A DNA stretch of 64,000 nucleotides from assembly GCA_025558095.1 (NCBI GenBank), contig JAIVFI010000021.1, positions 124,001 to 188,000 of the forward strand. The letters are read 5' to 3'. Below are positions 52,852 to 57,280 of this stretch, piece after piece (within the stretch, counting starts at the first letter, position 1; each line of letters starts with the position of its first letter). The position numbers were made by a program, and so were the translations under genes. The notes below the pieces were generated by a model, which made no database searches, was not told the DNA's origin, and worked only from the letters and a program-made list of their open reading frames with translations. The DNA is from Hyaloraphidium curvatum SAG 235-1. Its lineage: Eukaryota > Fungi > Monoblepharomycota.

Positions 52852-54012
52852 ATGAGCGCCGACGCGGGGCCGCTCCGCGTGGCGGTGATCGGCGGCGGCT
52901 GGTACGGCTGCCACATCGCGGCGGCGCTGCTTGCGCTGGGCCACACGGCGGTGGTGCTCGAGCGCGGCCCGCGCCTCTTCTCCGGCTCCTCGGGCGCCAA
53001 CCAGTTCCGGCTGCACGCGGGCTTCCACTACCCGCGCTGCGCGCGCACGCGGCGGCAGGTTGCGGCGGCGCTGGGCCGCTTCCTCGCGGCGTACCCGCGG
53101 CTCGTCGCCCCGCTCGCCGCCAACATCTACGCCGTGGCCGCGCGCAGCTCGCTGCTCGACTTTGAGACGTACGCGACCGTGCTGCGCCACGACGGCGGCG
53201 GCGCGCCGTTCGACGTGATCGACCCGGCCGCCGCGGGCCTCGCCGGCGTCGAGGGCGCGCTGCTGTGCCGCGAGCCGGCGCTGCTCGCCGACGCGCCGCG
53301 CGCGCACTTCGAGCGCGTGCTGGGCGGGGCGGTGCAGTGCGGCCGCTCCGTCGCCTGCGTGGCGTCGCTGCGGGCCCCCGGCGGGGAGGCCGTCGGCGCC
53401 GCGGTCGACGGCGAGCGCTTCGACTGGGTCGTCGACGCCACGTACGGGCAGCTGGACGTGCCCGTGCCCCGGCCGGCCCACTTTTTCGAGGTCTGTCTGA
53501 CGCTGGTCTACCGCCGTCTGGCAGAGGGCCCCGCGGTGGCCCGCGCATTCACCATCATGGACGGCGACTTCTGCTCCCTCTTCCCATATTTTTCCGACAG
53601 CGAGGACGCCGAGCTCGACCGGCGCAGGCTGCACACGCTGACCCACGTGCGGCACACGCACCTCGCCCGCTTCGGACGCTTCGAGGACGCCGCGGCGTTC
53701 GCCGCCTCCTTCGGCGAGGCGGACGCCCTGCGGTCGGTGCCCCTGTTCGAGGACGCCATCGTACGGTTCCTCCCGGCCTTCAGGGAGGAGTACCGGTACC
53801 ACTCGTACTTTCTGTCGTTCAAGACCAAGATCCCGGGGCGGACGGACGGCCGCGAGACCGTCTGCACGCACGAGGGCAGGGTCATCTCGGTCATGTCCGG
53901 CAAGGTGAGCACGGTCTTTGTCGCCGAGGACTATGTGCTGGACGTCATGGGGCTCGCGGGCAAGCGCGAACCCGGGAAGGAGGCGGTGGCAGGGGTTGCA
54001 AAGGCGAGCTGA
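52852..54012 (+). CDS. FAD-dependent oxidoreductase (DAO-like), intronless
   Basis: VAVIGGGWYGCHIA, SSGANQFRLHAGFHYPRC, FDWVVDATY, FTIMDGDFCSLFPY, TLTHVRHT, SVMSGKV. Confidence 0.88.
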   Translation: MSADAGPLRVAVIGGGWYGCHIAAALLALGHTAVVLERGPRLFSGSSGANQFRLHAGFHYPRCARTRRQVAAALGRFLAAYPRLVAPLAANIYAVAARSSLLDFETYATVLRHDGGGAPFDVIDPAAAGLAGVEGALLCREPALLADAPRAHFERVLGGAVQCGRSVACVASLRAPGGEAVGAAVDGERFDWVVDATYGQLDVPVPRPAHFFEVCLTLVYRRLAEGPAVARAFTIMDGDFCSLFPYFSDSEDAELDRRRLHTLTHVRHTHLARFGRFEDAAAFAASFGEADALRSVPLFEDAIVRFLPAFREEYRYHSYFLSFKTKIPGRTDGRETVCTHEGRVISVMSGKVSTVFVAEDYVLDVMGLAGKREPGKEAVAGVAKAS

Positions 54013-54162
54013 GGGGAGCGGAAGGGACGTCACCACAACCGATGCAATGTATTTGCGGTAAAGCAAACGTCGCTTGCCGCACCATCGCGACGCACGGATC
54101 GCACCGCACGGCCTCCGCCGCGCACGCAACGTCAACCGGTCGGCGACCCCGATCCGCCGCAG

Positions 54163-55854
54163 TCACCCAAACAGGCACTGGTAGGTTGCCTCGTAAAACT
54201 CCAGCGACGCCTCCAGCTCCCGCACCTCCCTGCATACCATCTCCAGCGCCACGCATGCCCCGTACTTCGCATCCTTCAGCGCCCGCGCTACCCCGGCGTG
54301 GTCCACCTTGGGGCCCACGTACGGCGCCAGCATCGGCTCCGAGACGTGGAAGTGCGCGGGCTGCCCCTCCTCCGCGGCGCGCGAAACCGCCGACGCCACG
54401 TCCTCCCCCGCCATGGCCATGCACGCCGCGTCGAGGTGCACCTGCAGCCCCGGGTGTCCGACCCGCCGCACCAGGGACAGGGCGTGGGCCGAGGTGGTGG
54501 CAAAGTTGCACCCGTACTGCGGGGCGTTGGGTTCCAGGCACAGGGCGCAGCCCCTGGAATGGGCGTACTCGGCGAGCGGGCCGAAGAGGGCGCAGAAGAT
54601 GCGGTCGGCTTCCTCGTGGGACATGCCGTCCGGGATCCGGCGGTTCTTGGGCGCGCCAAAGACGATGGGGAACGGGCCCGGGGAGGGGCGCCAGAGCTCG
54701 CGGAGGGAGGCGGCAAAGTCGACGACCACGCGGAGGTGCCGGGCGAGCCTGCCCCTCGCCTCCTCGGTGCCGAAGAGGACGAGGTCGGGTTTGCCGAAGA
54801 GGACGGCCTGGAGGGAGGAGATCCCGAGCCCGCGGGCCGCGAGGTCCGCCGCAAACCCCGCGACGAGCCCGTCGAGAACCCCGCCGGCGACGGCCCGCTC
54901 GATGGCGTCCCATGCAAAGAACCTGGTGGGGGCGACCTCAATGTACCGGTACCCGCGGGTCCTCAGCAGGGAAACCGCGGCGTCGTGGGACGGCTCGTCC
55001 CACGCGATGCACGAGACAGAGGTACGCCGGAACATGTTCCATTCCCCGAGGAACCGCGAAAAGGAGGCCAGGACTTGCGCGGCGGTGCAGATGTACGGCA
55101 GCCCCGCTGGGGCGCCGAACGCCTGACCGTGCTTCGTCAGGCAGTCGTAGCGCAGCGGCGGGCCGCCGTGGCCGACGTCGCGGGGCTCGACGTCTCCCGC
55201 CAGGAGGCCGGCATCCGAGATGAGCCGGATCAGTTCGGCGGTGGGCACGGGTTCGGGGAACAGGTTGGCCTCGCGGAGCCCGAGCTCCAGGGCGCGCTGC
55301 ATGTCCGCGGACAGCCGCGAAACGTCGTACCATTGGAACGCCGAGTTCATGTTGATGGCGGGGAGGTTGTTGCCCACTAGCAGGTCGTAGACGTAGTTCT
55401 TCTTAAGGTGGATGCCGAACAGCGCGGGGAGGCGGAGGACCAGGTGGTCGGGGAACCGGTCCCGCACGAAGCGCTCGAGCAGCGCGCGGTGCCTGCCGTA
55501 GGGGTGGAGGTCGGGCATGTCGGCGGCTCCACCCAGGCCGTCTTCGTCCCTTCGGCCGTCCGCCGGGTTGTAGACGTCGATGGTGGAAATGAGCACGAAG
55601 CGGTCGCATTCGACGCCCGCCAGCACGGCCTCCAGCTTCCGCAGGTTCGCCAGGTCGGCGTCCGGGTCCTTGTTTGCCAGCCATTTGGCGGCCGGGAGGG
55701 CGGCGCACACGACGGTGGAGAATCGGCGGCCGCGGGCGGCGCCGGCGTCGGTCGAGCGGAACGCGTGGTCGAACCTGAGTGCGCGCCGCAGAGACGTGCC
55801 GACGAACCCGGTGCTGCCGAAAAGCGCCGAGTTTGGCGGCGGGAAGCTCTCCAT
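54163..55854 (-). CDS. Fusion: NAD(P)-dependent epimerase/dehydratase + sugar-phosphate isomerase/epimerase (AP-endonuclease-2 TIM barrel), intronless
   Basis: N half: ALFGSTGFVGTSL, CAALPAAKWLAN, LISTIDVY, YGRHRALLE, LRLPALFG..KKNYVYDL. C half: SCIAW, IEVAPT, SLQAVLF, VFGAPKNR, LEPNAPQYGCNF, HLD, HFHVSEP, LEM. Confidence 0.88.
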   Translation of the reverse strand: MESFPPPNSALFGSTGFVGTSLRRALRFDHAFRSTDAGAARGRRFSTVVCAALPAAKWLANKDPDADLANLRKLEAVLAGVECDRFVLISTIDVYNPADGRRDEDGLGGAADMPDLHPYGRHRALLERFVRDRFPDHLVLRLPALFGIHLKKNYVYDLLVGNNLPAINMNSAFQWYDVSRLSADMQRALELGLREANLFPEPVPTAELIRLISDAGLLAGDVEPRDVGHGGPPLRYDCLTKHGQAFGAPAGLPYICTAAQVLASFSRFLGEWNMFRRTSVSCIAWDEPSHDAAVSLLRTRGYRYIEVAPTRFFAWDAIERAVAGGVLDGLVAGFAADLAARGLGISSLQAVLFGKPDLVLFGTEEARGRLARHLRVVVDFAASLRELWRPSPGPFPIVFGAPKNRRIPDGMSHEEADRIFCALFGPLAEYAHSRGCALCLEPNAPQYGCNFATTSAHALSLVRRVGHPGLQVHLDAACMAMAGEDVASAVSRAAEEGQPAHFHVSEPMLAPYVGPKVDHAGVARALKDAKYGACVALEMVCREVRELEASLEFYEATYQCLFG

Positions 55855-55972
55855 CAGGGGAGTCAAGGCGCTTTTTGATTGGGGATCGATGATGATGGTG
55901 CCCTTATTCTACTAGCTTCATTGGGGCCCCACCTGGGACACCGACGGACGACTTGTGGGACGCCACTCCCCG

Positions 55973-57280
55973 ATGCAGATCTTTTGGCTGTGGCAAGGAT
56001 CGAGGCCGCTCTCGGCGGCAGCCGTGCTGCTCGCCTCCACGATGCTGCTCGCGTGGTCGTGGTCGTGGTCGCGGACTGGAGGCCGCGAAGGACCGCGTCG
56101 GTTCTCCGTGCTGGCGGACCCCTCGCTGGCGGCGTCCTACGCCGCGTTCGTGCGCACCGCCGACGAGGCCGACGGCACCACGATCAGCCAGTACTCGCTC
56201 AACATCGGCTTCGAGGATTCCGTGCGCCGCAGCACGGCCTTCGTCGCGGACCCGGCCGCGGCCGACGCCGTCGTCGTTGCCCTATATCCAATCGCTTTGG
56301 GCCTGCACAGGCACATGGAGGGCAATCTGATGCGGACAATGGAAACCGTCGCCAAGCGCTTGGTTCCCGCCATCCGAAGCCTGCCCTCCAGGACCGTGCT
56401 CATCTTTGTTATTACGCACGTCGACGAGCTGCCCGAAATCAACCGGTATATCCTGCGCCGGGTGCGCGAGGTCCACCCCCGCCGCATCCTGCTGATCCGC
56501 ACGGACGTCGGCGATACCTCGTGTTCCTGCTACGGCAGGCCGTACTACGTCCCGGGAATTGAGAACCTCATGGCGCCCTACGCCGTCGCCAAGCCGCGTG
56601 CTCTGGTCTCGGCCGCCGAGCGGGGCTCTCTGGACCGCCCGCGGAACCTCACCGTCTTTTTCCGCGGCCGCAGCCCCGGCGTGCGCCGCAAACTCGCGGA
56701 CAGCATTCGCGCCCTCAAACGGCCGGACGTGCTCTATGACCTCGTGTCGGACGCCGGCGCGGACCGCGCGCGCCACGCGGACTACCTGGACAAGGCGCTC
56801 TCTTCCAAATTCTGCCTCGTACCGGACGGCGACGTGTCGAGCTCGCTCAGGCTTTTCGAATCCATCGTGGCCAGGTGCGTCCCCGTCATCTTTTCCGACT
56901 GCCCGGACCTTCTCCCGTTCGACGGCACCCCCGAGGTCGGCAACTACTCGGCATTCTCGCTCATCGTGCCCCTCGCCTCGAGCGGGTCCGCGGTCATGTC
57001 CAGGATCGACGCCGCGGTCGCCTCGGGCGCGTACCAAAGGATGCTGGCGCGCCTCGACGAGGTCTGGATCCACTTTACGGCGCCCAGGGTGCCGATTCCT
57101 GGGCAGGCCGGCGCCCACGCGCTGCTGCTGCGGCTCGCGAGTGAGGCCATGGACCGGATGGACGCGGGGTTGCCGACCAAGTGGTCGCGGTACGACGAGA
57201 AGAGGCTTTCGAGGTGCGTCAACATGTACGGCGATGCGTGGTTGCGGGCCTGGCGGCGGGGAGAGGTCGGAGGAAAGTAA
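55973..57280 (+). CDS. Exostosin-family (GT47) glycosyltransferase, type II membrane, intronless
   Basis: N-terminal TM; FVADPAAADAVVV, RNLTVFFRG, SSKFCLVPDGDVSSSLRLFESIVARCVPVIFSD..LPFD. Confidence 0.88.
   Translation: MQIFWLWQGSRPLSAAAVLLASTMLLAWSWSWSRTGGREGPRRFSVLADPSLAASYAAFVRTADEADGTTISQYSLNIGFEDSVRRSTAFVADPAAADAVVVALYPIALGLHRHMEGNLMRTMETVAKRLVPAIRSLPSRTVLIFVITHVDELPEINRYILRRVREVHPRRILLIRTDVGDTSCSCYGRPYYVPGIENLMAPYAVAKPRALVSAAERGSLDRPRNLTVFFRGRSPGVRRKLADSIRALKRPDVLYDLVSDAGADRARHADYLDKALSSKFCLVPDGDVSSSLRLFESIVARCVPVIFSDCPDLLPFDGTPEVGNYSAFSLIVPLASSGSAVMSRIDAAVASGAYQRMLARLDEVWIHFTAPRVPIPGQAGAHALLLRLASEAMDRMDAGLPTKWSRYDEKRLSRCVNMYGDAWLRAWRRGEVGGK

Follow-up and report, generated by a model that had tools for sequence, protein, structure and literature searches.

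A putative oxidation, epimerization, and reduction gene cassette linked to a GT47 glycosyltransferase in the chytrid Hyaloraphidium curvatum

The window analyzed here is a 64,000-nucleotide stretch (contig C21:124001-188000) of the 31.9-Mb genome assembly of the monoblepharid chytrid Hyaloraphidium curvatum. It contains a compact cluster of three genes (Table 1): g1, encoding a flavin adenine dinucleotide (FAD)-dependent oxidoreductase; g2, encoding an extended short-chain dehydrogenase/reductase (SDR) domain fused to a triose-phosphate isomerase (TIM) barrel; and g3, encoding a glycosyltransferase of family GT47. Alignments with homologues are unbroken along the full length of g1 and g2 and over approximately residues 70-400 of g3, and the absence of internal breaks indicates that all three genes lack introns. 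The initial annotation had described the genes as tightly packed and intronless, with short convergent and divergent gaps, and this was borne out by the open reading frames (ORFs), the Pfam matches, and the unbroken alignments. The spacer between the start codons of g2 and g3 is presumed to be a common promoter region, and the convergent arrangement of SDR-TIM and FAD genes is also found in the green algae Scenedesmus (L001) and Raphidocelis (L020). The cluster is real and conserved, and appears to be a so far uncharacterized sugar-modifying cassette that combines a known chemical logic with a new set of enzymes.

Table 1. Features of the cluster, in window positions
Feature	Position	Strand	Basis or remark
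g1, DAO-family FAD-dependent oxidoreductase	52852-54012	+	386 aa from first ATG, intronless
g1/g2 spacer between convergent stop codons	54013-54162		150 bp, from coordinates
g2 whole, fusion of extended SDR and ketose-3-epimerase-like TIM barrel	54163-55854	-	563 aa, intronless
g2 C-terminal domain, TIM barrel (aa 271-563 and stop)	54163-55044	-	Pfam, structure, invariant residues
g2 N-terminal domain, extended-SDR Rossmann (aa 1-270)	55045-55854	-	Structure match, invariant residues
g2/g3 spacer between divergent start codons	55855-55972		118 bp, from coordinates
g3, GT47 (exostosin-family) glycosyltransferase	55973-57280	+	435 aa, intronless

The product of g1 matches the Pfam family DAO (PF01266; 1.3e-10; 41.8 bits against a cut-off of 27.9). 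Its AlphaFold model, with a mean predicted local distance difference test score (pLDDT) of 91.8, has a two-domain fold whose nearest structures are glycerophosphate oxidase/GlpD, L-2-hydroxyglutarate dehydrogenase, and glycine oxidase (template modeling (TM) scores 0.61-0.68; 13-17% identity); GlpD and malate:quinone oxidoreductase, which are membrane-associated and quinone-linked, are among the closest folds. The g1 alignment revealed a dinucleotide-binding motif, GGGWYG, in which G14, G16, and G19 are invariant (GxGxxG), and g1 carries NQFRLHAGFHYPR and TIMDG. The block NQxRxHxGxHYxR, rich in His, Arg, and Lys, is invariant and specific to this family, and may form the site for an anionic, phosphate-bearing substrate. 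The FAD gene of the Raphidocelis cluster is 52% identical to g1. We propose that g1 is an oxidase that converts a sugar C-OH to C=O.

The g2 model (pLDDT 93.7) comprises two domains. Residues 1-277 superpose on UDP-GlcNAc 4-epimerase, MoeE5, and RmlD (VIA-align; Z 21-22.6, 246-266 aligned residues, root-mean-square deviation 3.0-3.3), and the N-terminal domain has both the Rossmann fold and the C-terminal substrate domain of an extended SDR. The Pfam match to RmlD_sub_bind is below threshold (16.7 bits against a cut-off of 27), and some homologues of g2 match PF01370 or PF04321. Residues K57, W58, N61, S90, T91, D93, Y119, G120, R123, E127, and R141 are invariant. S90, T91, and Y119 are thus retained, whereas R123 replaces the Lys of the YxxxK motif (YGxxR) in 33 of 33 sequences; because of this substitution, the N-terminal part of g2 is described here as an SDR-like domain belonging to a separate subfamily. 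It is proposed to be a keto-reductase, an activity that is assumed. The motifs quoted in the initial annotation were recovered: the g1 block and IMDG in g1, and in g2 the epimerase motifs as GSTGFVG and AAKWLAN; SNIAW is the family consensus and reads SCIAW in g2.

The C-terminal domain of g2 matches the Pfam family AP_endonuc_2 (PF01261; 1.8e-13; aa 300-558; 51.2 bits against a cut-off of 31.1). Its structural matches include the L-ketose 3-epimerase TM0416 (2zvr; Z 26.5, TM score by target approximately 0.8) and the 3-keto-D-glucoside 4-epimerase YcjR (6wn6; Z 24.3), and the barrel also resembles the 2-hydroxy-3-keto-glucal hydratase AtHYD and C-glycoside deglycosidases. Within the family, E441, D475, and E538 never vary and H501 hardly does; in the alignment with D-psicose 3-epimerase (7x7w), these four residues fall on its CLE, LD, HFH, and E positions. 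This domain is proposed to be a metal-dependent epimerase acting beside a carbonyl.

The g3 product matches Exostosin_GT47 (PF03016; 1.2e-19; 71.2 bits against a cut-off of 33.4) over profile positions 30-282 of 293, and its translation includes an N-terminal hydrophobic stretch (residues ~13-32) of the kind that type II Golgi membrane proteins have. An initial homologue search with g3 matched g3 alone, and an exhaustive search of 1.84 billion representatives was used in its place; besides g3, only three clusters reached ~1e-30. The g3 product is thus a member of a very small GT47 subfamily. It shares 44% identity with an ORF of the Raphidocelis cluster (L020:17282-18613) and 43% with a GT47 that adjoins an SDR-TIM gene on metagenome contig L021. 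We propose that g3 transfers the sugar made by g1 and g2.

In bacteria, some archaea, phages, giant viruses, green algae, and chytrids alike, the FAD, SDR, and TIM parts form a genetically inseparable trio. A scan of prokaryotes with one genome per species returned at least 543 matching stretches, and the 80 loci that were kept come from Pseudomonadota, Cyanobacteriota, Verrucomicrobiota (including Akkermansia metagenome-assembled genomes, MAGs), Bacillota, Actinomycetota, Planctomycetota, Gemmatimonadota, and Methanosarcinales. SDR and TIM are encoded by adjacent genes in 70 of these loci and fused in 10, and an FAD gene lies within 8 kb in 67. Glycosyltransferases of family GT2 account for 43/106 same-strand neighbors and match the models for ArnC (31), PgfS (27), AglJ (25), dolichyl-phosphate hexose transferase (25), and PpgS (11), which predicts that they are polyprenyl-phosphate sugar synthases. 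Small membrane proteins of the flippase-like GtrA, EamA, SMR, and TMEM234 types also lie beside the prokaryotic trio, and in Bradyrhizobium sp. CIAT3101 the cassette sits between Wzz/Wzy_C genes and GalE. Cassette genes bear only generic names in RefSeq. A plasmid search with the FAD protein of Streptomyces found four Rhodobacterales plasmids, on which all cassette genes are unnamed; the same kind of search with the Methylorubrum FAD protein gave no match at 1e-20.

Because the arrangement recurs in many unrelated genomes, the linkage is not a matter of chance. The domains are also fused in at least three orders: TIM-FAD-SDR (P0019, P0020), FAD-SDR-TIM (the chytrids, L044, L053, and L102), and FAD-SDR (L075, L076). 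This is strong evidence that the three activities cooperate, and they probably touch. In proteins of tailed phages (ESM Atlas clusters), the FAD family is fused to a Gfo/Idh/MocA sugar dehydrogenase. Phage-like contigs among L060-L068, L074, and L080-L081 carry the SDR-like domain only, and some split cassettes adjoin genes for UvsX, DnaB, and dCMP deaminase; together with the phage fusions, these observations indicate that parts of the system are in use in phages as well.

On four giant-virus-like contigs (L003, L005, L006, and L025), the FAD gene and SDR-TIM stand back to back, with a GT47 gene nearby; their viral appearance stems from genes for PCNA, UDG, SET proteins, and homing endonucleases, ankyrin arrays, and many orphan ORFs. 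A scan of IMG/VR identified 59 loci, mostly from giant viruses and many of them labeled as giant-virus MAGs. The FAD gene lies within 10 kb in 46 of the 59, and within 200 bp in 36 of these 46. The other viral neighbors are genes of glycan metabolism, encoding FkbM methyltransferases, GT2, GT61, GT47, GT11, GT25, and UDP-glucose dehydrogenase. The SDR-TIM protein of L118, from a MAG labeled "bacterium," is identical to that of the IMG/VR viral contig L046, and both fall in the giant-virus clade; L118 looks like a mis-binned viral contig inside a bacterial MAG. The same clade includes the FAD-SDR-TIM fusion of L102, a Sulfurovaceae MAG.

In eukaryotic clusters other than that of Hyaloraphidium, the trio is joined by TPT-family sugar-nucleotide transporters and methyltransferases. 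Phlyctochytrium arcticum (L002) carries, side by side, genes for a methyltransferase, a GT47, an SDR-TIM protein, two FAD-SDR-TIM fusions, and a TPT-family transporter. The two triple-fusion genes (L002:11937-15050, minus strand, and L002:18549-21665, plus strand) are inverted and flank the TPT gene, and the identity of FAD-domain pieces between them suggests a recent inverted duplication. In Fimicolochytrium jonesii (L019), SDR-TIM, an FAD-(SDR)-TIM fusion, TPT, and GT47 are present. These copies, from Spizellomycetales, carry introns, unlike those of Hyaloraphidium. Raphidocelis subcapitata (L020) has SDR-TIM, an FAD gene, and a GT47 ORF, and Scenedesmus (L001) has FkbM methyltransferases, TPT, SDR-TIM, and pieces of an FAD gene. 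The public annotations of both algae hide the cluster: the Raphidocelis GT47 ORF (minus strand) is unannotated and intronless, and the Scenedesmus FAD gene (L001:11819-13068, minus strand) is swallowed by a mis-called 4343-aa gene model. The homologue lists of g1 and g2 contain no further fungal, algal, or eukaryotic group except FAD copies in ascomycetes. These ascomycete homologues (P0091, P0105, and P0162, from Fusarium, Coniochaeta, and Bimuria) nest within alphaproteobacterial sequences with a clade support of 99 and represent a separate candidate transfer from bacterium to fungus.

Collectively, these findings favor, with a probability of roughly 0.6, a glycan-building cassette that oxidizes, epimerizes, and reduces its substrate to a rare activated sugar for transfer by GT47, and that was gained as a block from algae or a giant virus. 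The mechanism is modeled by analogy with YcjQRS and DprE1/DprE2. In this scheme, g1 would oxidize one secondary hydroxyl of an activated sugar, likeliest a cytosolic nucleotide sugar, to a ketone; the TIM-barrel domain, using a metal, would invert the stereocenter beside the ketone via an enediolate; and the SDR domain would reduce the ketone with NAD(P)H. The net product would be an epimer not obtained with ordinary single-enzyme epimerases, and the use of a separate oxidant and reductant would make the conversion effectively irreversible. The product would then enter the Golgi, where g3, as a putative type II membrane GT47, would transfer it to a wall or secreted glycan. A nucleotide sugar is the simplest substrate because it is the sole form common to all contexts: in bacteria, GT2 would load the nucleotide-sugar product onto a lipid carrier, and in eukaryotes it would be used in the Golgi by the TPT transporter and GT47. 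The folds and the gene context suggest an unusual activated sugar as the product.

The closest conceptual precedents share parts of this scheme. In mycobacteria, the flavin oxidase DprE1 and the SDR DprE2 invert C2 of decaprenyl-phosphoribose (PMC11127046). As in that pair, epimerization in the cassette would be divided between a keto-forming flavin oxidase and a separate NAD(P)H-dependent SDR reductase, and the bacterial genes likewise occur with a polyprenyl-phosphate sugar synthase and a small GtrA-type flippase in a surface-glycan locus. The analogy is confined to the logic: the flavin fold of DprE1 is of the VAO type and DprE2 belongs to the classical SDRs, whereas the oxidase here is of the DAO/GlpD type and the SDR is of the extended nucleotide-sugar type. 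Unlike DprE1/DprE2, the cassette always includes a third activity, the metal-dependent TIM-barrel epimerase, and eukaryotic and viral cassettes pair with GT47 rather than a GT-C enzyme. Three-component pentofuranose systems can also include an auxiliary epimerase, ORF13 (PMC11127046). In Escherichia coli, YcjS/YcjR/YcjQ oxidize C3 of a glycoside, epimerize C4 (YcjR), and reduce C3 (Mabanglo et al. 2020, cited in PMC11543891), and PMC11543891 gives YcjQ and YcjS as two sugar dehydrogenases. The proposed sequence of steps is similar, in that a dehydrogenase generates a 3-keto-glycoside, a TIM barrel epimerizes the adjacent carbon, and a second enzyme reduces the ketone. However, the E. coli guloside-to-glucoside system is catabolic, acts on free glycosides, and lacks a transferase, flippase, or association with viruses. 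YcjQ and YcjS are NAD-dependent, and neither is known to be a flavin oxidase or an extended SDR.

Other comparisons concern single components. Ketose 3-epimerases (D-psicose, D-tagatose, and L-ribulose enzymes and TM0416) give the best structure and sequence matches to the g2 barrel, with the Glu-Asp-His-Glu set kept, but they are stand-alone enzymes acting on free ketoses, whereas the g2 barrel forms one protein with an SDR and is linked to a flavin oxidase, and shares only 15-20% identity with them. For the GT47 partner, a parallel is provided by chlorovirus PBCV-1, in which A075L is an exostosin-like xylosyltransferase of the capsid N-glycan; that review mentions no FAD/SDR/TIM trio with it (PMC9614988). 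A giant virus of green algae thus encodes a GT47-family enzyme for virus-specific glycans, and A075L itself matches g3 weakly (E 0.2 over ~45 residues). The bacterial cassettes resemble GtrABC/Arn-type periplasmic glycosylation in having ArnC/GtrB-like GT2 enzymes and GtrA/ArnE-F-like membrane proteins. Those known systems, however, load a ready-made nucleotide sugar, and none has been described with an oxidase-epimerase-reductase trio. None of their membrane components is present in the eukaryotic cluster.

To examine the origin of the cluster, adjacent separate SDR and TIM translations were concatenated into a two-gene supermatrix, and chytrid FAD domains were entered as single-exon pieces, with no spliced gene models joined; the trees carry long branches and a biased composition, as flagged by the tree tool. 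For g2, Hyaloraphidium falls in a clade with support of 100/100 that contains Scenedesmus, Raphidocelis, one more algal sequence, and five metagenomic sequences, and the two Spizellomycetales form a clade apart from it. The approximately unbiased (AU) test rejects a grouping of Hyaloraphidium with Spizellomycetales for g2 (p = 7.8e-6, at a cost of 73 log-likelihood units). The g1 tree is congruent and places Hyaloraphidium with Sphaeropleales (support 99). Since the closest g3 relative found is the Raphidocelis cluster ORF, all three genes favor a transfer of the cluster as a whole. Fused genes of the eukaryote type fall outside the prokaryotic clade of the large tree (99) and adjoin virus-like fused genes, which points to an algal or giant-virus lineage, rather than a bacterium, as the immediate source. 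The cluster was probably acquired horizontally as a unit, and its sequences make a lineage of Sphaeropleales, or a giant virus with the same fused genes, the most likely source of the block.

At the locus, the cluster is flanked by CoA-transferase, glutathione S-transferase (GST), and pleckstrin homology (PH)-domain genes. The C-terminal domain of the GST is in a different frame from the upstream ORF and the PH-domain gene is likewise split between frames, which fits introns in host genes. A viral island was considered and rejected, given these frame-split host genes at the flanks and a uniform base composition. The GC content at third codon positions (GC3) is 0.87-0.95 in the cluster genes and 0.88 in a host gene, and this host-like value indicates that the transfer was not recent. 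FkbM-type (Methyltransf_21) methyltransferase genes occur at 19 places in the Hyaloraphidium genome, none within the cluster; the same family joins the trio in Scenedesmus and giant viruses. The whole cluster is repeated on the 28-kb contig C49 (C49:22436-28112; L009, L012, and L017), which aligns with window positions 51.5-58.5 kb at 99.3-99.9% nucleotide identity with ~24 gap positions. In that copy g1 is frameshifted, g2 contains a TAG stop, and g3 is identical, and the public NCBI model P0001 (521 aa, 97%) derives from its g2. A second functional paralogue was rejected on the basis of the identity and gap positions, and the C49 copy is probably a haplotig or unpolished duplicate.

The interpretation in the initial annotation was supported in part. 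It had placed bacterial homologues in surface-polysaccharide loci beside glycosyltransferases, as the Wzz/Wzy context and the GT2 frequency (43/106 neighbors) attest, and the homologues proved to be neighbors in bacteria, giant viruses, green algae, and two other chytrids. A horizontally acquired module with three activities agrees with the trees, the AU test, and the domain fusions, but the nearest relatives are fused genes of algae and giant viruses, not the bacterial genes that had been expected. Vertical descent shared with other chytrids, which would have spoken against the proposal, is at odds with the grouping with Sphaeropleales and the rejection of chytrid monophyly. The linked GT47 was found only in eukaryotes and giant viruses; bacteria use GT2 polyprenyl-phosphate transferases and flippase-like proteins instead.

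Several points weigh against the preferred reading of a glycan-building cassette gained as a block. GT47 genes occur in none of the 80 prokaryotic loci and within 10 kb in only 6 of the 59 viral loci, and viral GT47s are only ~26% identical to g3, so the link to GT47 is one of family rather than of a single orthologous partner. The reductase activity of the SDR domain is an assumption, because its YxxxR is not the canonical YxxxK and its Pfam match is sub-threshold. Neither a transporter nor a methyltransferase gene belongs to the Hyaloraphidium cluster itself. Within the algal clade of the careful tree, Hyaloraphidium sits in a polytomy, which is compatible with more than one direction of transfer, and the group used in the AU test was named after the first tree had been seen. 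Finally, the GT2 and flippase-like context in bacteria is equally compatible with lipid-linked and nucleotide-linked substrates.

The last point leads to the alternative that the same cassette and chemistry act on a polyprenyl- or dolichyl-phosphate sugar, with electrons from the FAD enzyme passing to a membrane quinone, as in GlpD. The bacterial trio is interleaved with GT2 genes resembling ArnC, PgfS, PpgS, and Dol-P-hexose transferase and with GtrA/EamA/SMR-type membrane proteins, the quinone-linked GlpD and malate:quinone oxidoreductase are among the closest folds to g1, and there are precedents in DprE1/DprE2 and in the proposed conversion of UndP-Ribf to UndP-Xylf by ORF13 (PMC11127046). 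A lipid-linked substrate is a serious rival for the bacterial systems. For the cassette as a whole we regard it as rather unlikely, given that the partners in eukaryotes and giant viruses are GT47 enzymes, which use nucleotide sugars, joined in eukaryotes by TPT-family proteins, which carry nucleotide sugars. Moreover, the eukaryotic and giant-virus clusters showed neither a Dol-P-sugar synthase nor a GT-C enzyme, the fold of the SDR domain is the complete extended-SDR fold known from nucleotide-sugar enzymes, and the translations of g1 and g2 show no obvious membrane segment. A catabolic role, in which the trio converts or salvages unusual glycosides in the manner of E. coli YcjQRS and the adjoining GT47 is unrelated, draws on the resemblance of the barrel to YcjR, AtHYD, and C-glycoside deglycosidases, all from degradative 3-keto-glycoside pathways. 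It is very hard to reconcile with a neighborhood made up overwhelmingly of biosynthetic genes (glycosyltransferases, methyltransferases, Wzz/Wzy, flippase-like proteins, and sugar-nucleotide enzymes), with the lack of recurrent glycoside hydrolases, sugar kinases, or uptake transporters in the neighborhood tallies, and with the little use that viruses would have for sugar catabolism, and we consider it highly improbable.

A further alternative concerns descent rather than chemistry: the cluster could be ancient in eukaryotes and vertically inherited, its patchiness reflecting many losses and the alga-like position of Hyaloraphidium reflecting hidden paralogy. Spizellomycetales do have several paralogues (a stand-alone SDR-TIM and two FAD-SDR-TIM fusions), the chytrid clade and the clade of algae and Hyaloraphidium are close together within a single "eukaryote-type" group (support 88-93), and GC3 in the Hyaloraphidium genes is host-like. 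Vertical descent is nonetheless improbable. Both the g1 and g2 trees unite Hyaloraphidium with Sphaeropleales, the closest relative found for g3 likewise belongs to the Raphidocelis cluster, and chytrid monophyly fails the AU test. The homologue lists lack other eukaryotic groups, save the ascomycete FAD copies that nest in alphaproteobacteria, and the genes are intronless in Hyaloraphidium but contain introns in Spizellomycetales. In addition, the same fused genes occur in giant viruses, which are known to infect zoosporic fungi, among them Fimicolochytrium, or to integrate into their genomes (PMC13533422).

The initial annotation knew of no such fungal pathway, and none is described in the searchable literature, where no publication on an FAD/SDR/TIM cassette was found (subscription literature lay outside the scope). 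The broadest form of the proposal is that the trio constitutes an undescribed and very widespread route to a sugar epimer, with a product unmatched by known nucleotide-sugar pathways, coupled to GT47 in eukaryotes and giant viruses, in a cluster that moved between alga (or virus) and fungus; we judge this claim to be evenly balanced. If the preferred model of the cassette holds, the trio would represent a new way to an activated sugar and would imply a monosaccharide or stereochemistry in surface glycans that lies beyond current pathway maps. The carriers include nitrogen fixers (Azotobacter, Bradyrhizobium, and Paraburkholderia), Akkermansia-type gut MAGs, cyanobacteria, giant viruses, and freshwater algae. 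The route would also supply a candidate donor for GT47 enzymes outside plants and animals, and the cluster is a rare conserved eukaryotic metabolic gene cluster that seemingly travels as a block, possibly via giant viruses.

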